A stretch of DNA of 63,853 nucleotides, counting the filler, from Octopus bimaculoides (lineage: Eukaryota): the NCBI RefSeq assembly GCF_001194135.2. It is 8 parts of 6 records of this genome, joined end to end, with 100 filler letters (N's around TTAATTAATTAA, not from the genome) between each part and the next. Parts side by side here need not be neighbours in the genome. Positions count along the whole stretch, not along the records: positions 16,422 to 26,858 come from NC_068990.1; 7 more parts are not named here. One strand, 5' to 3'. The position numbers were made by a program, and so were the translations under genes. How positions within the stretch are numbered: position 1 is the stretch's first letter; the number at the start of each line of letters is the position of its first letter. Below are positions 9,011 to 26,958 of this stretch, one piece after another. The notes under the pieces are model-generated. The model ran no database searches and was not told the origin of the DNA. It was given only the letters and a program-made list of their open reading frames with translations.

Positions 9011-10079
9011 TTTTCTGCCTGCTTGGTTTATAGGTGAATGAAGAGATATTAATTTTGCGATGATGTGTCTAGGAATAGGGTGGTGAACGTTTAAACTCCA
9101 AATTGGATTATAGAATAGAATATTCGTCGGTCTGTTTCAACGTTTGAGAATAGATTTATGAGTTATTTAATATAGTTTCCTTTGAAGCTACTATCACGAA
9201 CCAGTAGTTCTTTTGACACTCTGCTCTCAGGGATCAAATCCCGCAGAGGACAATTTTGCCTATTATTCTTTCAAAGTCAATAAATGTAAGTAAGAATTTT
9301 GGGTAGTGGATTCTTTGAATCGTAAGAATATCAGTGATTAAGTTATTCAGTATTTAAAATCTTCAAGACTTGAAACTTGCATACAGCTGTGTCTCATCTC
9401 TGTCACACATGCTACAGATGAATTGTTTGGAATCGCCGAAACTTACAGTGTTAGCTAAAAACATATAGATACATTCTACAGAATATATTCATATGCTGCA
9501 AGAATTTGTTGCGGCTCTTTACGTTTCGGTGTCACATTCTGTTTACGTGTTTAAAACGCACCCTTGTCATTCCGCGAATCGAGCATGATGAATCCTCTAA
9601 GTAAATACCATCAACGAAAAGATGGTATCGGGTCAAGTTGAAACTATGAGGTACTTTCCCAGTGAGCACGGTATGTACTCTGGTGAGCATCACCTGTAAT
9701 TCTTCAACGTATTTCCTTGAATGATTGAACAAACAATTTTCCAAATCTACTTCTTTTCCATTATTATGGTTGTCTAAAAGACCATCGATCTTGAATGAAC
9801 CTCCCTGCAAGACAAGGAATCTTTCGTGTAATTTATTTTATCCTTATCATTCTTTCTTGAAACAAATCTTACTCGGTTATCTCGTATTCATTTGTTATTT
9901 GTTGTCAGGTGAATATTTTTACTGGACTTATGTTATGTACCAAATGTTATGAATTCCTTTCGTAATCGTCTGCAGGAAATCCGAGAAACCATTTTCAAAG
10001 ACGAGTTTCCAATTTATAGTACGATTCCGCTCTCACGTTTTTCACCGTTTACCTTTAAGTTATTTATGTGTTTACACCT

Positions 10080-16143: not shown

Positions 16144-16716
16144 TACATTATTGCACAAATACGTTGAATTTTATCTGTGTCGTTTGCTTGCAATTTTTGC
16201 TCCTGACTTCATAACTACTAGAGGCTCACCTACAGTATCACTTAAAATTATTAGCATTCATTTCTCTTGTTATGTATATGTATATATCTATATCTATATG
16301 TTTATATATACGTTTATATATNNNNNNNNNNNNNNNNNNNNNNNNNNNNNNNNNNNNNNNNNNNNTTAATTAATTAANNNNNNNNNNNNNNNNNNNNNNN
16401 NNNNNNNNNNNNNNNNNNNNNTATATATATATATATATATATATAATGGAAGTAAAAAAGGCACGCATAAAATTAAATCGTTAAATTATAAAACTTTTCA
16501 AAAGAATAAAAACAAAAATAACAAACATGAGACTAATAAATGATGGTCGGCAAAAAACATAGTGCAGCAGGCTTTCATCAATTACTCCAAAAGGTGACGA
16601 CTGCATCTTCGCTCCCCAATAAGTTCATCAGGTTCAACGGTGTTGTTGGATCGATATCTTCAATCACCAAACACTTCAACACTCAACGCAGAGTGAAATA
16701 ATTTTATATATAAATT

Positions 16717-16747
<31 letters not shown>

Positions 16748-16821
16748 CTGTATATACACCATGTAATTGCGAGTGTATATATTTAAATATATGTGTATGC
16801 CTGAGATGTGATGTTTAAATT

Positions 16822-18423
16822 TCATTTTCTTGCTTTCTTTGGTTGGGAAAGTTCTGCGATTGCATTCGTAGTCTCTGTCGTAGCAAACTGCAGGACTGGA
16901 GAGCTTAGGGGCATTGGAAGGGTTATTATTTGTTGGGTTCCATTGTTTTGATCCGTAGATTGGAGGGCAGCTGATTGCTGAAAGTTTAGAAGAGAACCGT
17001 CTGGCAGTGTAGGAGCGGCATACACGACTCCTTGAGGGGTCTGATACATCACAAATCCAGGGGTCATAGTTGTGGCCGATGTCGTACCATGCTGACCCGT
17101 GGCAGGGACAGACATAAGGTTTACAGTCTGGTTTTGGGTGTTATTTGTACTTGTCGAAACCGACGTCGCTGATGTCGTGGATGCTGAAGCTGTTAGTTGC
17201 AAGGCTTCTCCACTTACTGAAGTCACCGTCGTTGGGCTACTCATGTTTGTATTATTATTGGTGTTGCCAGATATATTGGCTATGGACACTACTTGTGTAT
17301 TAGGTAGTCGGTACACAGGTGCGGCTGCCGCCTGGGCGATTTGTTGGGTCCCCTGTTGAAAGGGGATTGTAAATTGCGTCCCTGGCTGCAAAATAGCCGT
17401 CAGACTAGGCGATACCTGCATGGAGATATTAGTGTTCGTGTTGCCATTGCTGGTGGTAGAATGGGTTGAGGCGGTGGTAGCATGAGCAGCAGTAACAGAA
17501 ACCGGCTTTGTCGTGGTTGCAGAGCTAGATGGTATCGTTGATAGAGTGGAAGGCACCAGCGCGGCCATGGGTAACTGATTCTGACCGACACCAGTTGAAG
17601 TAACGTACAGTGACGTTGATTGCGGTGGCGGAGGCGACGACGTCATGGCGTTACCTATAAGTTGAGATCTGTTTAGCACCTGGTCCCCTGGCATCTGGGC
17701 CAAAAGGGGTTTCAAATCCGCTTTATTTTCATCCTCCACTGAATACGTTAGTTCAGTTTCTTCGAATCCGGTAGGGTTCATACGTTGTTGATGGGAAGGA
17801 CCATCGGCAGAAGTGTCCGGGGAATTTAAACAGGTTTGGATAAGGGCTTTTCCGCTGTCACTCGTTATCATGGGTTGAAGCTTGCGAGTGGCGAATGTAT
17901 ATACATGTCCCGTTTCACTCGCTACAAGCAGCATTACCTGAGTACCAGTTAATGTAGATAATTCATAAGCTTTTTTCATGATCCCAGTTTTTCTTTTACT
18001 GAACGTTGTATACCTGCGGAGTTTATTTTGAATAAATTCCATTTTGATTTTGACACGACCTTTTGTCTTTTTGCCAGGTTTTAGTCCATCGGGCGGTCGT
18101 CTAACCTGATGTTGGCCTTGGTTTTGTTGATGTGACTGTGATTGTAAATGTAAATCGTTTCCAATACAATCACTTTCTGAATCTGAATCCGAATTATCGT
18201 CACCAAGTTCGTTATTGGAATGTGTTGAAGCCATGGTTGTCTGCATCCTGCTGCCTGGAGCCAAACTCAAGTGTTTCGAGTCAGCCCCACTCGGAGCGGT
18301 CGATGCAATTCCCGAAGTTTTGAATACGCTTTGATCCACTAGTAGTCTACTACCATTTGTTATGTTATCTGAATGGACGTACTGCGATACTGTTAACGTT
18401 TCACAGTGATTAGAATTCTGCAT
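16822..18423 (-). CDS. SRF: Serum response factor (SRF-type MADS-box transcription factor), single-exon ORF, 533 aa from the first ATG
   Basis: KPGKKTKGRVKIKMEFIQNKLRRYTTFSKRKTGIMKKAYELSTLTGTQVMLLVASETGHVYTFATRKLQPMITSDSGKALIQTCLNSPD (about 18081-17815) is nearly identical to the animal SRF MADS+SAM core; downstream QRMNPTGFEETELTYSV and GFVMYQTPQGVVYAAPTLPDGSLLNF match SRF motifs; uninterrupted frame to TGA. The track's start at 18429 is a TTG; the ATG is at 18423. Confidence 0.97.
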   Translation of the reverse strand: MQNSNHCETLTVSQYVHSDNITNGSRLLVDQSVFKTSGIASTAPSGADSKHLSLAPGSRMQTTMASTHSNNELGDDNSDSDSESDCIGNDLHLQSQSHQQNQGQHQVRRPPDGLKPGKKTKGRVKIKMEFIQNKLRRYTTFSKRKTGIMKKAYELSTLTGTQVMLLVASETGHVYTFATRKLQPMITSDSGKALIQTCLNSPDTSADGPSHQQRMNPTGFEETELTYSVEDENKADLKPLLAQMPGDQVLNRSQLIGNAMTSSPPPPQSTSLYVTSTGVGQNQLPMAALVPSTLSTIPSSSATTTKPVSVTAAHATTASTHSTTSNGNTNTNISMQVSPSLTAILQPGTQFTIPFQQGTQQIAQAAAAPVYRLPNTQVVSIANISGNTNNNTNMSSPTTVTSVSGEALQLTASASTTSATSVSTSTNNTQNQTVNLMSVPATGQHGTTSATTMTPGFVMYQTPQGVVYAAPTLPDGSLLNFQQSAALQSTDQNNGTQQIITLPMPLSSPVLQFATTETTNAIAELSQPKKARK

Positions 18424-18539
18424 TGTCAACGAGAAAGGAATAATTTACCAAATTAAACGAACTGCCGTCAATAGGAAAGCCATAACGGGAAAGTGAGGAA
18501 CAAATTACAGCCAAGCATTCAATAACTACACAAATATAT

Positions 18540-18574
18540 ACTTCCGCCAAAAAAGTCCATTACGATTCGCCATT
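18540..18574 (-). promoter_or_regulatory. ETS-type (CGGAAGT) and YY1-type (AATGGCG) motifs in the probable SRF 5' leader/proximal promoter
   Basis: acttccg 18540-18546 and cgccatt 18568-18574 on the plus strand. Confidence 0.35.
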
Positions 18575-18778
18575 GTCAAATATAAAGAAAACTAATAAAT
18601 AACTACGACACAAGCACTAATGATTGTTTAAGGGAAACTACTATATTGTCAGGCATTCGCAATATAACTGTCTGCAAAATAACTGTGTATTTGCGTGTAT
18701 GCAATGAAACTAGCGCGGAAGAATATGTGAGGTTGGCCGTGTTGTGTTACCCGTATCAAGTTTGGAAGTACGGGGTTC

Positions 18779-18840
18779 CCATATATGGATGGCACGGCCA
18801 AATATGGCGCACGTGGAATGTGTGTGTGATTGACCCGCCC
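18779..18840 (-). promoter_or_regulatory. SRF promoter: tandem CArG boxes, E-box, GC box
   Basis: CCATATATGG 18779-18788, CCAAATATGG 18798-18807, CACGTG 18810-18815, CCCGCCC 18834-18840, in a CpG-retaining island upstream of the ATG. Confidence 0.85.
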
Positions 18841-20139
18841 CTCGCTTCACTCATTCTCTCTCTCTTCGTTTAATATTCTTCTTATCACTAACTCTTTCCC
18901 CTCCTTCTCTCCACTCGTCTATCTTTTATTCTTTCTCTAAAAAAAAAAAAAAAACCTTTCTCCTTTTACCCTCTCTTATTCTCTATGCAACAGTAACATA
19001 CCGCTCCCACTTCGACTATTTGGTGGTTCTGACGATAAGCTTTCAATAAACTATGGTAGCCACTAAATGTCACTTTTCTTAATTAAAGTTTGTCCATTCA
19101 TAATTTTTCTTAATATTAAAATAATTCATGAAAATAGAGATAAGAGTATGTTAACAAAAAATATCTTCGAACCATACGTTTAATTTTTTGATTAAAAAAA
19201 AAATACCTGTTATACGCAGAACTACCCAACTTTACCCAATTTTTTGTTCACTATCAAAATAATTCATTGTGCGTCTAATTATAATTTTTCTTTCATCAAA
19301 GTAAGTTTCAAATTAAAGAATAGTAATTGTAGATTACTCCTTATAAAAAACACAAGAGATAAATCTCTAATTATTAAATATTCATTTTATTTTAAACTTA
19401 TCAACATAAAAGCAGAATCGAAATTCTGTTGCAGGCGAGTAAGTGCTTCTGTAATAAAGAAAGGGCAACTGTCGCATGTGGCGTGCTTTTTTTACTACTA
19501 ACTTTCACAAAAGCGTGTTTGTTCGTGTGAGAGGCTCTGACAACTCGAGGTTTTATTTAGAACGTCTTCTCTCTCTCACTGCATCTCTCTATCTTTCTCT
19601 TTATATCCTCTCTCTCTTTCTACCTTATATTCTCTTACTGTTTTCTCTCACTTTTTAACACTCATTTTTCTCTGTCTATCTATTTATCTGTCTGTCCATC
19701 TTTCTGTCAGTCAGTCTGTCTGTCTATGCCTTTCTCTATCTTTTCTGCCTTTCTCTCTCTCTCTCTAAATTAATTTTTCTTTCCTCATCTAATCTTCTAT
19801 CTTTTCTTCTCTTTTCTTCCATTATGCTTCACTTTTTCTCGTTCTCTTTATAACTTTTAATCTCTCATATTTTCATTTATGTCGTTATTTCTCATATTCT
19901 TTTAATCTCTTCTTATACTTTCCTTCTATTTTACTCATTTCTCTCCCTCTACATACCTCCTCCTCCGTGTTTCTTGTATCCACCCACTCTTCTCTGTTTT
20001 CCCTCTTCTTTTTCTCACATTCCTATTTTCGTTTTCATTTCTGTTTCTCTTGATCTTTCTGTCTCGCCTTTTTCTTTTCTCCATTATATCTCCTTACTCC
20101 ACTTTCTCCATCTTTCACCCCCTCCCCCTCCTCCTCTTC

Positions 20140-20236
20140 TTCTTCTTCTTCTTCTTCTTCTTCTTCTTCTTCTTCTTCTTCTTCTTCTTCTTCTTCTTCT
20201 TCTTCTTCTTCTTCTTCTTCTTCTTCTTCTTCTTCT
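20140..20236. repeat. (TTC)n microsatellite
   Basis: Directly visible. Confidence 0.95.
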
Positions 20237-20271
20237 TTATTCACTCATATTCTTACCATTATCTTTTTTTC

Positions 20272-20460
20272 TGCGTTTCAGTCATTAGACTGCGGCCATA
20301 CTGGGGCACTGCCTTGAAGAGTTTTAGTCGAAGGAATTGAGGCCAGTACTTAGTTATTCTTAAAATCTGGTACTGTTGGTCTTTTATGTCGAACAGGTAA
20401 ATTACAAGGATGTTAACAAACCAACTCTGGTTGTCAAACGGTGATGGGTGACAAACACAC
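20272..20460 (-). mobile_element. SINE family A 3' half
   Basis: tttcagtcattagactgcggccatactggggcac...ggttgtcaaacggtg. Confidence 0.8.
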
Positions 20461-20527
20461 GCACATACATATATATACATACACTCATACATACATACAT
20501 ACATACATACATACATACATACATACA

Positions 20528-21145
20528 TGGACCAACAACCAGATTACTACCTCCCACTTTGAAGGGTATGTATTTGCAATCCAGGAACAGGAAATATCAA
20601 CCAAATACCCAATGCACAAAAGGGACAGAGATGCAGAAAAAGCAGTAAAATGTGACAACCGATGCAGACTTTGTGGAGTTTACACTGAAGATATCACCCA
20701 CATCAGAAGCAGTTGTCCGAAAATGTCATCACGGTATTATCTGCAGTTACTCTATCCAGATTACAAGTTCAGGCTTATACCTGTAATTATTGGGACCCTG
20801 GGATATGTAACACACTGCTTAAATGCCAATCTTCAGAAATTAGGCTTCCGCAAAGCCAGAAAGGAGAAAGCTAATTCAAAGACTACAGATTCAATCCATC
20901 GCTAGAATTGTAAAAATCGGTAAAACTTTCCAGAAGTTTGTCATTTAAGTATATATGAGCATGTCTAGATCTGCAAGCATATGCATGAGAATACATACAT
21001 AAAACAAACATACAAATCAGTAAATATATATACATACATACATGCATGCATGCATACCTTGTTGTTGCTGTTGAAATTCCAATGAAAGACCGTTGGAGCT
21101 AGGTTAGAAACTGGTTCTTTCTCAAGTGGCAAGAAATCTTGAAAT
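20528..21145 (+). mobile_element. 5'-truncated, internally deleted R4-clade (RLE-type) non-LTR element: CCHC knuckle, nuclease tail, 3' UTR
   Basis: EGYVFAIQEQEISTKY...CRLCGVYTEDITHIRSSCPKMSSRYY...IPVIIGTLGYV; flanked by (CATA)n on both sides. Confidence 0.8.
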
Positions 21146-21649
21146 AAAACTGAATAATGATATGTATGTACATACAGACAAACATGCATACATGTATACA
21201 TCCATACATATATGCATGCATGCATGCATCCATCCATACATACATACAATATTAAGCTTAGAAGCTATGCACATTAACAGAATTTCCGACGAAAGTAGAA
21301 TAAAACAAACCGCACATATATACATATACATAAAAACATGAACAGAAATCTTCGAGCGAAGAATTTTGAACGAATCTGAATAAATCACAAGTTTGCTTCT
21401 AACCCACAGACATTATATAAAGAGACGAGGAAGGAAAAAATTACTGTTAAGAGATCCCCCCCCCCCCAGAAAATCTTGTATTATTCTGGCTGAAAATCTG
21501 GAACGAAAAGAGAAATCTCAAGCTCAGTGCATCGTGACTAAATGCAGTAAAGAGAGAGAGAGTAGTGTACTAGCATAAGACAGCAAAACATATGCAGTTG
21601 ACTCGGAAGCTTTCACCATAGCTGTAGGCAAACTGTATAATGGAAGGCA

Positions 21650-22340
21650 TCGGGAAGGGCCCTAATAGTTGGATATTGGTATAACAAGCTGACATTTTAC
21701 AGGAAACCACTAATAAGTTTATTCAAAAGTACTATGGAAGGTCAGATTGACATACGAAATTGATTTGCTATAGCACGGACGAATCTCGTGGCCAAGAACG
21801 AAACCACTGAGTTGCCTGAAAAGTATAGGCTCGTTGCTTGCCTAAACATTATGTACAATCTATCTCAACCAATTCCTCCAGGATCATTGCGAGTCCAGCA
21901 ACATAGCGACTGATGAGCAGGTTTGAAGTTGGAAAAAAAAACAAAAAAAAAAAACATCGTCGGAGCCTTACAACAGTATGGGCTTGATTGGAGGAAAGCA
22001 TTTGGCTCTTTCCCCCACTCATGGCTACTGAAGTGTCTCCATTTGGTAAAAGAATCTGCTATCTTAATTACTGCCATTGAGAGGCTAACAAAGACCTGGA
22101 AAACAATTCTCGCTCTCAGAACGGAGAATGGAACGGTCATCTCAAATGCCATAAACACTTCAAAGGGCATATTTCAAAGAGAGAGTCTCTGTAAGTTTGT
22201 CCATGTTGGCGTTAGATTCATTGTCATTCCTGCTACAAAAATCAAATGGCTACATCCTAGGGTCTGCAACTGTTAGAAATATTAATGTAACCCATAATTT
22301 TGTGGATGACCTCAAGATTTGTGTTTAAAATGTTAACAAT

Positions 22341-22374
<34 letters not shown>

Positions 22375-23220
22375 AAAAGAAAAAACCCAGCTGGAATTAA
22401 TAATATTTTCAGCCAACATAGGAATGGAATTTGGCCAAAAGAAATGTTTATATTTGATTGTTGAACGGGGAAAATCTATTCCCCGGACCCCAAACTTGTG
22501 CAGCAATGCTCTCACTATCTCTCCTGTCCCACACAAAGAATGCTACGAGTACCTAGGCATTGATGAAAATATATTATACGAAGGTACTTTGAATAAAGAT
22601 AGAGTGACCCAAGAATATTATAGCAGACTTAGAAAAATAAGGCAGCCGGAACTCTTCTCTTGCGGTACTCCCACAATGCATTCGCAGTACCAGTGCTGAT
22701 TCCAACATTTGAGACATTTTTGTGGTCTATAGAAGAAATCCACTCCATAGACATTAAAACCCGCAAGATTCTGACTTCAACTGAAATCTCCACAGAAAAA
22801 GTGATATCGACAGGCTCTACCTTCGAAGAGATAGAGGAGGTAGAGGCTTGAAATTAGTAGGCAGCCTCAGATAGCACTTGCTAATCAACAACAGCAAAAA
22901 TAATTTCATTAACTTAGTGCTGAAAAGTGAAGGAAACAATATTCTAAGTGTCGGAAGCGAACTCTTCAAGAAGCATTCTCTTCCTGATGACCTCCCATAC
23001 AATCCCAAAACAGTTGCATTAACATACTTCAAAAAAGACCTGGAAGTGAAACGCTCAGTATACCAAAACGAAAAAAAAAAAAAAAAGACCATGTAGGGGT
23101 ATGTTTCCTGAAGGCTTGAAGAAGACAATAACATTGAGATGAAGTGAAGTCTCTCTTGGACTCGTGACTAATCCAAAACAATCTAAAAACAGGAGATTGC
23201 TACTAAATACCTAATAAACA
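21650..23220 (+). mobile_element. Degenerate R4-clade reverse transcriptase region
   Basis: KYRLVACLNIMY, LDWRKAFGSFPHSWL, KGIFQRESL, HNFVDDLKI, GMEFGQKKC, YEYLGI, FHRKSDIDRLYLRRDRGGRGL across frameshifts. Confidence 0.85.
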
Positions 23221-23222
23221 AA

Positions 23223-23328
23223 GCTATAGTAGAAGACACTTGCCCAAGGTACCACGCAGTGGGATTGAACCCGGAACCATGTGATTGGTAAGCAAGCTAC
23301 TTACCACACAGCCACAACTGCACCTACA
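23223..23328 (-). mobile_element. SINE family A head
   Basis: agtagaagacacttgcccaaggtaccacgcagtgggattgaacccggaacc...taccacacagcc. Confidence 0.85.
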
Positions 23329-24084
23329 ATTACATATATGTTTANNNNNNNNNNNNNNNNNNNNNNNNNNNNNNNNNNNNNNNNNNNNNNNNNNNNNNNN
23401 NNNNNNNNNNNNNNNNNNNNNNNNNNNNNNNNNNNNNNNNNNNNNNNNNNNNNNNNNNNNNNNNNNNNNNNNNNNNNNNNNNNNNNNNNNNNNNNNNNNN
23501 NNNNNNNNNNNNNNNNNNNNNNNNNNNNNNNNNNNNNNNNNNNNNNNNNNNNNNNNNNNNNNNNNNNNNNNNNNNNNNNNNNNNNNNNNNNNNNNNNNNN
23601 NNNNNNNNNNNNNNNNNNNNNNNNNNNNNNNNNNNNNNNNNNNNNNNNNNNNNNNNNNNNNNNNNNNNNNNNNNNNNNNNNNNNNNNNNNNNNNNNNNNN
23701 NNNNNNNNNNNNNNNNNNNNNNNNNNNNNNNNNNNNNNNNNNNNNNNNNNNNNNNNNNNNNNNNNNNNNNNNNNNNNNNNNNNNNNNNNNNNNNNNNNNN
23801 NNNNNNNNNNNNNNNNNNNNNNNNNNNNNTATATATATATATATATATATGATATGTGTGTGCGTGTGTGTTAACTCTGATGTTTACCTTAATAAGTTCA
23901 TCTACGGGTGCAGGCTATGAACCAAAATAAAATGCCAAGTAGTGTTTGTTTATTGCATCAAGCACATGTCCTAAAATCAATAAATATCCGTTGAGTTTTA
24001 CGATTAGAAACGACAAGAATAGAGTGAGCGAGTGATTTCATTACATCAATTTCCAATTATTTCGTTTGAATTCAAAATGGTGAA

Positions 24085-24960
24085 TTTGTATGGGCAAGGA
24101 GCTCATTTTGCAATCACGTGGTTTCGGCTTCATATTGTAAAAATTTATATATTTATTAGGTGTAGGCACAGTTGTATTGTTAGGGAGCTTGATTTGCAAT
24201 GACGTAGTTTCGAGTTCACGTCGTTTCGGGTTCATGCCGTTTCCAGTTCACGTGGTTCATAATTTAAAACTTTATATATTTATTAGGCGTAGGCAAAACT
24301 GTACGGCTAAGGGGTTCGTTTTGCAATCACGTGGTTTCGGGTACAAATTTTAAAACTCTGTATAGTTATTAAGCGTAGGTACAGCTGTATGGTTAAGGTG
24401 TTCCTTTTGCAATGACGTGGTTTCGGGTTCACGTGGCTTCTGGTTCACGCGGTTTCGGGGTCACGTGGTTTCGGGGTCACGTGGTTTCGGGTTCATATTG
24501 TAAAATTTTATATTTCTTAGGTGTAGGCACTACTGTATGGTTAAGGAGTTCGTTTTGCAATCACATGGTTTGGGGTTTCAGGTTCATCTTTCAAAATTTT
24601 ATACATTTATTAGTTGTACGGTTAAGGAGCTCATTTTGCAATCAATCATATGGTTTCAGGTCCATATGTAAAAACTTGATGTATTTATTAGGAGTGGTTA
24701 TAACTGCATGGTCAAGGCACTACTGTATGGTTAAGGGGTTCGTTTTACAATCACGTGGTTTTGGGTTCAGGTGGTTTCGGGTTCATATTTTAAAACTTTA
24801 TATATTTATTAGACGTGGGCACAGCTGTATGGATAAAGAGCTCATTTTGCAATCACGTGGTTTCGAATTCAGTGAAACTGCGCTGCAATTTGGGTGAGTA
24901 TCTTTTACTATAACCAATGCCTTGGGAAGGAATTTGGTTGACGAAAACCGTGTGGAAGAC
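24085..24960 (+). repeat. Tandem array of ~8 SINE-head units (75-150 bp) ending in a SINE body
   Basis: Unit ggtgtaggcacagctgtatggttaaggagctcattttgcaatcacgtggtttcgggttca + AT-rich spacer, with a nested ~15-16 bp cacgtggtttcggg(g/t)t repeat; the last unit continues into family A body sequence. Confidence 0.9.
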
Positions 24961-25539
24961 TGTCTATGCGAGTTTGTGTCTGCATTGACAACAGAGTTTC
25001 AGTTCGTTTACACATGCGTAACTTAGCGGTTAATAAGGAACTTAGCATGAGAAGACTGAGTGTCAGTATGTTTTATCTATGACCATAAGTCCGACAAAAT
25101 ATATTTTATTCTGCCTGAAGGCTTGTGAAGAGCAATCTTCAGGCGAAACAAGATACAGTATGTAAGACTCATGATTATGGATTAAATGTGTGTGTGTGTA
25201 TATATACATACATACATGCATAGATACATAAGAACATACACACCATCTTCGAACATCTTTCCTTTAACATCTTAAATGTAGGATTTCTTCCTTGAAGACG
25301 GAGGCTCGACTCATCCTATGATGGAATCAATCTACAAACACTATTATGGACCATCGAGTCCCCAGAAACAGCTGTTGGATTTGCAATACTGTTCTTCAAC
25401 CCCTTTAATTCTGTATATCATTTCTAATCTAATCTGTGTAAGGTGGATCTTTTTATATGTAAACATATAAACATACATACATATGTAGTGAAACTAACAC
25501 TTCTATCGCCATTATATACAAACAAACCATCTTCCCCAC

Positions 25540-26566
25540 TGTTATAAATATATTCAAGTTCGGGCGTAGTAGAGAGCAGCCTGCTGTATCCATCACATGA
25601 CTGACTATTCTTTGCGCGGGTAAATTATCTCGTACCGTTCCTGCCAGAACGCAAACTGACCAATCACAGCCCCTAATAAGGTCACGTGATAGTGTTTTTC
25701 TAATGCTTCTCTGTAGCCTACCTTCAGCTATAAATAGACTAAATTATACCCGGCAAATTGGTCGCGCCTCAAATCTCCTTTGAGATCTGGTGTTGACCAC
25801 ACACGCGTAACACAGCAGCAACCAGTTTCCAGCGACGACATCAACACCATCGTACAACTACGAACTACAAGCATCGCCACCGATGTCGCCAGCAGCAACA
25901 CGACTCTGCGTACTACCAGCATCGCCGCCAGCGTCAACATGACTCTACACGTACACTAGCTATCAACAGCTAACCAAACTACCGCAGAACTTCTGTCTTC
26001 GATCCTGTTTGTGTGATTCGCCTCACCACGAAATAACAGCCAAGAACCCAGCCTGCGAAGAACATCTGTATTCAAGAACCCGGCTTGGCATAGTAGCCCT
26101 AACATCACAACTAATGATCGCTCTGCCCCACACGCCTTAACTTCTTATATACAGACACTTACCACTGTGTACTCTAAGAACTGGTATCTTAAATTCTTAT
26201 ACGCGTTACTGACTCTTTTCTATACTATGTATCTCTTGCATACNNNNNNNNNNNNNNNNNNNNNNNNNNNNNNNNNNNNNNNNNNNNNNNNNNNNNNNNN
26301 NNNNNNNNNNNNNNNNNNNNNNNNNNNNNNNNNNNNNNNNNNNNNNNNNNCCAGTCTTATATTGTGTTTTATTATGTCGCATTCACACTCACACACAGAC
26401 ATACATTTTAATACTACAATAAATCTTACTGTTATTCATCTCATACGGTTGTGTTCCTATCGTCTTCCTTACTGGCATTTACGAATTGTCTATGTTATCG
26501 AAGTATAACATATAACTATATCATTTGATATATTTTTGTGTTCGACCGTGTGACGCGTTTAATAAA
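25540..26566 (+). mobile_element. Probable solo LTR (or orphan Pol II transcription unit); right end lost in gaps
   Basis: Begins TGTT, CpG-rich, promoter boxes at 25660-25736, short internal repeats, no long ATG ORF, AATAAA at 26561-26566. No TSD confirmed. Confidence 0.55.
25660..25736 (+). promoter_or_regulatory. CCAAT box, CArG box, E-box, TATA box
   Basis: gaCCAATca 25660-25664, CCTAATAAGG 25672-25681, gtCACGTGa 25683-25688, TATAAATA 25729-25736. Confidence 0.7.
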
Positions 26567-26958
26567 NNNNNNNNNNGACACTTACCACTGTGTACTCTAA
26601 GAACTGGTATCTTAAATTCTTATACGCGTTACTGACTCTTTTCTATACTATGTATCTCTTGCATACACATACATGTATTACTCACACACACACTTTTGTT
26701 TACATGACGACCAGTCTTATATTGTGTTTTATTATGTCGCATTCACACTCACACACAGACATACATTTTAATACTACAATAAATCTTACTGTTATTCATC
26801 TCATACGGTTGTGTTCCTATCGTCTTCCTTACTGGCATTTACGAATTGTCTATGTTATNNNNNNNNNNNNNNNNNNNNNNNNNNNNNNNNNNNNNNNNNN
26901 NNTTAATTAATTAANNNNNNNNNNNNNNNNNNNNNNNNNNNNNNNNNNNNNNNNNNNN

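Follow-up and report, generated by a model that had tools for sequence, protein, structure and literature searches.

The window analysed here, a stretch of 63,853 nucleotides of Octopus bimaculoides DNA with filler included, holds at 16422-26858 a piece of chromosome CM046610.1 in which SRF is encoded on the minus strand:

16822..18423, minus strand: SRF coding sequence, an uninterrupted open reading frame in a single exon, with its ATG at 18423 and its stop at 16822 (533 aa plus stop).

The encoded protein has an exact match in the O. bimaculoides assembly GCA_001194135.2 (CM046610.1), is 98% identical to the O. sinensis 'serum response factor-like' protein, and carries the Pfam PF00319 SRF-TF MADS domain (E = 7.8e-21). 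Its residues 113-206 align with the crystallised human SRF core (1K6O, 1SRS/1HBX) at E = 3e-51. This DNA-binding core is ~94% identical between octopus and human, with about 6 differences, and specificity for CArG boxes is therefore expected to be retained in the octopus protein.

The octopus locus was compared with SRF loci and flanks from O. sinensis (L001), Argonauta hians (L002), Sepia (Acanthosepion) pharaonis (L003) and a second decapodiform taken from ENA (L007), which bring the cephalopod loci to five, and with further SRF loci from the abalone Haliotis rubra (L008), the scallop Pecten maximus (L010), the annelid Capitella teleta (L011) and the tawny owl (Strix, L012). The SRF coding sequence is one exon in each of the five cephalopod loci. 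The MADS box is split by an intron at one common place (about octopus aa 150-152) in abalone, scallop, Capitella and owl, and all four genes have additional introns too. Because the ancestral SRF promoter and 5'UTR are still present, the loss of all coding introns in cephalopod SRF seems to have happened in place, cDNA-mediated conversion being one example of a route, and not through retroposition elsewhere.

Upstream of the start codon lie two perfect CArG boxes and a third, degenerate one:

18798..18807, minus strand: CArG box A (distal), a perfect CC(A/T)6GG, CCATATTTGG on the gene strand and CCAAATATGG on the plus strand.
18779..18788, minus strand: CArG box B (proximal), a perfect CC(A/T)6GG, the palindrome CCATATATGG.
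18756..18765, minus strand: degenerate box C, CCAAACTTGA, 23 bp after the start of box B.

At least two consensus CC(A/T)6GG boxes thus stand directly 5' of the SRF gene itself. On the gene strand, box B begins 19 bp after box A, and the pair occupies the interval 356-384 bp 5' of the SRF ATG, its nearer edge (18779) being 356 bp from the A of that codon; this confirms the positions given by an earlier sequence-only reading, which had described two perfect boxes beginning 19 bp from each other at a distance of 356 bp upstream of the ATG. Box C occupies the position of the third CArG or CArG-like box in other phyla. The same reading had considered the pair unlikely to be random, on an estimate of ~4 chance CArGs per window. 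That figure proved an overestimate, 0.84 being expected in the whole window, and the judgement itself stands: first-order Markov simulation of the piece (9,835 non-N bases) yields 0.76 CArG per piece, and a pair no more than 30 bp apart appeared in 19 of 20,000 such simulations. The sole other perfect CArG within the piece is at 25672.

Among cephalopods, both boxes are found with the same sequence and the same 19-bp offset in all five loci, with box A starting 373-387 bp 5' of the SRF ATG; the prospect, raised by the sequence-only reading, that related species might lack the boxes is not borne out. They are embedded in a larger conserved element:

18730..18848, minus strand: conserved non-coding block, presumed to be the proximal and core promoter, in which the CArG boxes and box C are accompanied by a GC box, an E-box and an M-CAT-like site (L009 5576-5694 in octopus locus coordinates).

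In the alignment of the five cephalopods this block is essentially invariant over the stretch that spans GGGGCGGGTC, both boxes and ACACGGCC, and on the gene strand it reads GGGGCGGGTC ...(12 variable)... ACATTCCA-NN-TGCG-CCATATTTGG-CCGTGCCAT-CCATATATGG-GAACCCCGTACTT-CCAAACTTGA-TACGGGTAACACAACACGGCC. By blastn, octopus and Sepia share 90% identity over 120 bp of the block, compared with 72% in the coding sequence, and octopus and the second decapodiform share 85.5% over 138 bp. Across the 13.6-kb locus, the octopus-Sepia blastn comparison returned two non-coding matches, namely the block and ~70 bp just before the ATG, and nothing alignable upstream of the block. Octopodiforms and decapodiforms split roughly 250-300 Myr ago. 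Because it is conserved across this split, 18730-18848 is, as judged by alignment, a strongly constrained non-coding element, and since the spacers are also invariant across cephalopods, factors besides SRF must constrain it too. The cephalopod CCAAACTTGA is evidently a decayed third CArG box. A 75-aa open reading frame (18646-18873, plus strand) overlaps the block; a coding role is ruled out by invariance at all positions and unalignable flanks, unlike the 72%-identical coding sequence. No known structured RNA was matched in the block in Rfam at E ≤1.

This conservation also settles whether the pair could be a product of base composition. Two A/T-rich decamers might turn up by accident in an A/T-rich genome, the piece having a GC content of 38%, but such pairs are scarce in the simulations and the boxes are perfectly conserved between lineages hundreds of millions of years apart. 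A chance origin has a practically negligible probability and is excluded by the conservation.

The block contains the following further motifs:

18832..18841, minus strand: GC box of Sp1/KLF type, GGGGCGGGTC on the gene strand and GACCCGCCCC on the plus strand, invariant in five of five cephalopods.
18814..18821, minus strand: M-CAT-like motif ACATTCCA, directly 5' of the E-box, invariant in five of five cephalopods.
18810..18815, no strand assigned: E-box CACGTG, 2 bp past the second box (box A).
18804..18809, plus-strand reading: ATGGCG, overlapping box A.

All motifs listed by the sequence-only reading are present, including the GC box near the CArG pair and the ATGGCG, a YY1-like core overlapping the second box, although box C and ACATTCCA, which we take to be M-CAT-like with the TEAD-type consensus CATTCC, had been missed. 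With its start 33 bp ahead of box A, the GC box qualifies as an adjacent box of Sp1 type. GC boxes adjoin the cluster in Capitella as well, on the side opposite to the cephalopod one, and likewise in Strix, where they lie on both sides of the CArGs as against 5' of them in cephalopods. Not every motif proved equally durable. The CACGTG indeed follows 2 bp after the second box, but it is kept only as a member of the CANNTG class (CATGTG in Argonauta, CAGCTG in the two decapodiforms) and only in cephalopods, none being found outside them. The ETS core proposed to recruit a TCF-type partner is likewise there, as ACTTCCG at 18540-18546, 233 bp from the nearest box (box B), but the position reads GTAAAT in Argonauta and AGAACT in Sepia, which leaves a TCF partner at that site unsupported. 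No conserved canonical TCF-type ETS site beside the boxes is evident in the cephalopod alignment: the sole GGAA beside box B sits in GGGAAC, and TTCCGC (about 18716-18721) is lost in decapodiforms. The arrangement of a c-fos-type, TCF-dependent SRE, with a conserved ETS core in good TCF context beside a CArG, was not found. Another candidate, TATTCTTCCGC, common to Octopus and Pecten downstream of the boxes, was set aside as unreliable because its TTCC is lost in decapodiforms.

Box A is preceded by GCG on the gene strand, which creates a YY1-like GCCATATTT that fits the YY1 consensus. In vertebrates, YY1 and SRF compete at CArG boxes, and because box A is overlapped by GCCATATTT in Pecten and Capitella as well, YY1-SRF competition at box A is plausible here. 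A separate motif, GGGAACCCC (18770-18780, minus strand; L010 about 9769-9778), directly adjoins box B and runs into its 3' end in the scallop as in every cephalopod, and matches the kappaB-type consensus GGGRNYYYCC at 9/10 positions. Such motifs raise the question of whether SRF is the main occupant. The boxes might be bound mainly by other factors (YY1 on GCCAT-containing boxes, TEAD on ACATTCCA, a Rel-like factor on GGGAACCCC) and the module be mainly repressive or SRF-independent; the recurrent YY1-fitting overlap, the invariant spacers, which imply extra binding proteins, and the vertebrate precedent for YY1-SRF competition all lean that way. We nevertheless hold this to be quite improbable, given that the CC(A/T)6GG pattern and the spacing are retained across phyla while flanks vary, that the G of GCCAT is missing at cephalopod box B and at Strix boxes A and B, and that we know of no animal MADS factor other than SRF with CArG specificity, MEF2 preferring CTA(A/T)4TAG. 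SRF thus remains the favoured ligand of the boxes.

The position of the transcription start site (TSS) can be projected from mouse Srf, in which a pair of CArG boxes in the first 60 nt before the TSS mediates regulation by SRF (PMC7203814, citing Spencer & Misra 1996, Belaguli et al. 1997). The leader would then comprise:

about 18700..18745, minus strand: predicted TSS zone, by analogy with mouse Srf, at the end of the cephalopod conserved block.
18445..18483, minus strand: upstream open reading frame (uORF) of 12 codons (MAFLLTAVRLIW, then stop) in the presumed 5'UTR, its start 60 nt 5' of the main ATG.

A TSS at about 18700-18745 would give a 5'UTR of about 300 nt, and this placement fits with cephalopod conservation stopping there, with the stable distance between boxes and ATG, and with the conserved leader features downstream. 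The uORF has the same length, and the same LIW before its stop, in Argonauta and both decapodiforms. Short uORFs starting with ATGGCG or ATGGGG precede the ATG by 63 nt in Haliotis, 55 nt in Pecten, 51 nt in owl and 119 nt in Capitella. Alternatively, the ATGGCG of the uORF may represent a YY1 core located 3' of the TSS. Cephalopods and abalone (L008 9973-9985) have in common an identical 13-mer, AAATTATTCCTTT (about 18434-18446, minus strand), situated 10-13 nt ahead of the SRF ATG; it may be a leader element. Sepia Logan contigs (L004-L006) were considered as TSS-defining transcripts and rejected, being collinear with the genome for 1.5-1.8 kb 5' of the ATG.

With its boxes 356-384 bp from the ATG and no canonical TATA box 3' of box B in Octopus, the block could also be an upstream enhancer, or lie inside the transcribed 5' leader or an intron of an SRF transcript starting further upstream. 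This is improbable in our view: Octopus-Sepia conservation is nil upstream of the block, the homologous-looking mouse boxes are within 60 nt of the TSS (PMC7203814), the spiralian boxes keep a steady 259-387 bp from the ATG, in agreement with a 5'UTR of fixed length, and a conserved uORF and leader motifs downstream are expected if the 5'UTR begins just after the block. A position in the proximal promoter is therefore preferred. Service of the boxes to a divergent upstream gene was ruled out, none being visible within 8 kb upstream, where only repeats, reverse-transcriptase fragments and gaps are seen.

This upstream DNA (18840-23300 and 24200-24800) is repeat-rich, with CT/GA-rich low complexity at 18840-20300, a perfect (TCT)34 array at 20135-20237, ACAT/TACA microsatellites, and 16-bp and 86-bp tandem repeats at 24202-24785. 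Open reading frames at 20441-20905, 21923-22276 and 22424-22699 (plus strand) are reverse-transcriptase/zinc-knuckle fragments of non-LTR retrotransposons, and assembly gaps (N) extend over about 23340-23870 and 26240-26430. In abalone (L008 1-1498) and Capitella (L011 6519-8566), the gene next upstream of SRF, on the same strand, belongs to the FAM177 family, which points to conserved microsynteny; no FAM177-family gene is visible in the 8 kb upstream within the octopus piece.

Outside the cephalopods, boxes with the same arrangement precede SRF in each of the four further loci (offsets are from the start of the preceding box):

Haliotis rubra: box A CCGTATTTGG; box B CCATATTTGG, +19; box C CCATACATGG, +23; start of box A 333 bp to the ATG.
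Pecten maximus: box A CCATATTTGG; box B CCATATTTGG, +19; box C CCAAACATGG, +23; start of box A 259 bp to the ATG.
Capitella teleta: box A CCATATTTGG; box B CCTTATTTGG, +19; box C CCATAAATGG, +23; start of box A 368 bp to the ATG.
Strix: box A CCATATAAGG; box B CCATAAAAGG, +20; box C CTTTATATGG, +23; 170 bp 5' of the ATG.

The sequence of box A is identical in the five cephalopods, Pecten and Capitella. A spacing of about 20 bp between boxes A and B is found throughout, at 19 bp in five cephalopods, one gastropod, one bivalve and one annelid, and at 20 bp in the owl. The 19 + 23 pattern had been set down from the spiralian loci before the owl locus was examined. When nine loci of 13-35 kb were searched for three CC(A/T)6GG boxes with at most 2 mismatches in total and spacings of 19-20 and then 23 bp, precisely one match was obtained in each of the nine, always on the gene strand and always 5' of the ATG, with the qualification that the 19-20 tolerance was widened after the owl had been seen and that the pattern derives partly from the same loci. 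Simulated sequences contained no such triple (0 in 300 sequences per locus).

Likeness beyond the boxes themselves fades with phylogenetic distance. Over the 52-bp module, Octopus matches Pecten at 42/52 positions (spacers 15/22), Haliotis at 37/52 (spacers 12/22) and Capitella at 29/52, with spacers at 5/22, that is, at chance level; between Strix and Octopus, an unscored in-register comparison revealed no spacer resemblance. As the spacers too are alike and the sequence is alignable within Mollusca, the straightforward reading of the molluscan module is descent rather than convergence. The likeness of the annelid and the bird, as far as these sequences go, is one of layout (box identity, order, spacing, orientation and position), not of alignment. 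Between octopus and Strix, position, orientation, box order and spacing are kept, in a layout comparison that covers the eight spiralian loci and, as its one vertebrate, Strix.

A metagenome scan for invertebrate SRF promoters with the pattern TATTTGGCC-N7-CCWTATWTGG was abandoned as a source of further loci, none of its 33 matches having a nearby MADS box. These matches (L013-L045) are mostly 19-bp tandem direct repeats in prokaryote-like, GC-rich contigs; CTTATTTGGCCATCTTGCC arrays occur in three of them (L020, L027, L039), and an element 'CTTATTTGGCCCCGGA(C/G)CCCTTATTTGGCCCCACTC' recurs in about 8 GC-rich contigs. The metagenome repeats with the TATTTGGCC pattern look like iteron- or repeat-type sequences unrelated to SRF.

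Several known systems offer points of comparison, the closest being the vertebrate SRF promoter itself. The likeness to it that had been suggested for octopus is apt: mouse Srf has the two CArG boxes described above (PMC7203814), and Dieterich et al. 2005 (PMC555765) had remarked on the conservation of this feedback loop among human, rodents, zebrafish and fugu. In the mouse and human SRF promoter (Spencer & Misra 1996, 1999; Belaguli et al. 1997; as cited in PMC7203814 and PMC555765), two consensus CArGs about 20 bp apart lie directly 5' of SRF and GC boxes of Sp1 type are adjacent, as in octopus, and the arrangement is conserved among orthologues. In the owl the boxes lie at 0, +20 and +43 bp, and in Octopus at 0, +19 and +42 bp. 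The first two read CCATATAAGG and CCATAAAAGG in the owl, as opposed to CCATATTTGG and CCATATATGG in octopus. The owl also has two CCAAT boxes, whereas Octopus has none; the third element is decayed in cephalopods, unlike that of the owl; and the 5' leader is predicted at about 300 nt in octopus compared with about 100 nt to the annotated ATG in the owl. Function has been demonstrated solely in the mouse SRF promoter. No description of a CArG-autoregulated SRF promoter in any invertebrate was found in the literature searched. Such a promoter is known in vertebrates, and what is new is that its predicted counterpart is now seen in cephalopods and other spiralians.

More distant parallels can be drawn with other CArG-containing promoters. 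The c-fos SRE and the CArG clusters of Egr1 resemble the octopus promoter in having consensus CArGs that are often clustered; they integrate signalling via SRF cofactors, and a YY1-like GCCAT overlaps at some of them. Octopus differs from the c-fos SRE type in having no evident canonical TCF-type ETS site beside the boxes. Plant floral MADS genes and yeast MCM1 autoregulate through CArG/P boxes and, as proposed for octopus, place a MADS factor on CArG-type sites of its own promoter; these proteins belong to other subfamilies and kingdoms, and the parallel is one of recurring circuit logic only, without evidence for homology of the cis-elements.

Regulatory DNA is almost never recognisable across phyla, and a genome-wide search found just 25 segments conserved between vertebrates and non-deuterostomes (Frith 2023, PMC10735318). 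These segments resemble the SRF module in being promoter-proximal and in keeping their position and orientation by an orthologous transcription-factor gene. They differ in being alignable, whereas the SRF module shares with the vertebrate one only motif identity, order and spacing; moreover, nearly all of Frith's genes were kept as multiple copies, whereas SRF is single-copy in most vertebrates. In the part of that report consulted here, the sole CArG discussed is that of the Nr2f promoter, and SRF is not named among the segments.

How old, then, is the SRF circuit? Because the layout is common to cephalopods, abalone, scallop, Capitella and owl, the loop most likely predates the protostome-deuterostome split, and SRF self-regulation is probably far older than vertebrates. 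We give somewhat better than even chances to the stronger proposition that the three-CArG module (A, 19-20, B, 23, C) is a single cis-element from the last common bilaterian ancestor, situated just before the first coding exon, in which case autoregulation would be more than 550 Myr old and would have been kept in the form of the order, spacing and orientation of its binding sites. Homology with the vertebrate SRF promoter is not proven, because Capitella and Strix share only the identity, order, spacing and orientation of the boxes. The spiralian module might thus be real and SRF-bound while its likeness to vertebrates arose independently, the loop being old in Spiralia and not a bilaterian inheritance; two SRF dimers about two helical turns apart and an A/T-rich element at the TATA position could have been selected more than once. 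Several differences are compatible with such convergence, which we regard as a real but lesser possibility. Strix and spiralian spacers show no visible resemblance in register, the A-B spacing in Strix is 20 rather than 19 bp, its boxes are CCATATAAGG and CCATAAAAGG rather than CCATATTTGG and CCATATWTGG, its third element, CTTTATATGG, might be nothing more than a TATA box, and SRF goes unnamed in the text consulted of Frith's vertebrate-protostome search (PMC10735318). Convergence would, however, have to account for the joint occurrence of one box order, one orientation with respect to the gene, a B-C offset of 23 bp throughout and an A-B spacing that is almost the same, at the same location 5' of the first coding exon, when simulations gave no such triple. 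Nor is the spacer difference decisive: Capitella also lacks spacer likeness to molluscs and yet clearly has the same layout, so that loss of the spacers with the layout kept is the expected pattern of decay. Inheritance from a bilaterian ancestor is therefore the reading we retain.

Overall, 18730-18848 on the minus strand is likely to be the proximal promoter of SRF, with boxes A and B, autoregulated as in mouse and with an inherited three-box layout. The suggestion made by the sequence-only reading, of a candidate autoregulatory loop, is supported through the conservation of boxes and spacing, the loop itself being a prediction. We infer SRF occupancy, the position of the TSS, the sign of the feedback and the identity of the cofactor. 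SRF dimers, the product of the adjacent downstream gene, would bind boxes A and B and, together with cofactors, most plausibly of MRTF type, and Sp/KLF on the GC box, would drive SRF transcription; the GC box would probably bind Sp/KLF-type factors and ACATTCCA TEAD-type factors. The SRF produced would feed back on its own promoter, making the gene signal-responsive, as has been shown experimentally for mouse Srf. Since box A begins 19 bp before box B and 42 bp, or about four helical turns, before box C, the boxes would be held in a fixed rotational register, and this might explain why the spacing is kept while the spacer sequence is not. The preference for an MRTF-type over a TCF-type cofactor mode is a guess, made because no convincing conserved TCF-type ETS site is seen. 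In a human reporter study, overexpressed SRF represses an SRF promoter reporter (PMC7203814), and the sign of the feedback is therefore uncertain.

If the bilaterian reading is true, the SRF module would join a very small number of promoter 'grammars' that can be followed from protostomes to deuterostomes. Were SRF binding confirmed, it would also be a compact and experimentally testable module of ~50 bp, which could serve to ask why the spacing of sites stays fixed for more than half a billion years, and could help to dissect MRTF- versus TCF-type control of SRF in invertebrates. For cephalopod neurobiology, SRF is likely an activity- or actin-responsive gene, and its promoter, thus defined, could be used in reporters.
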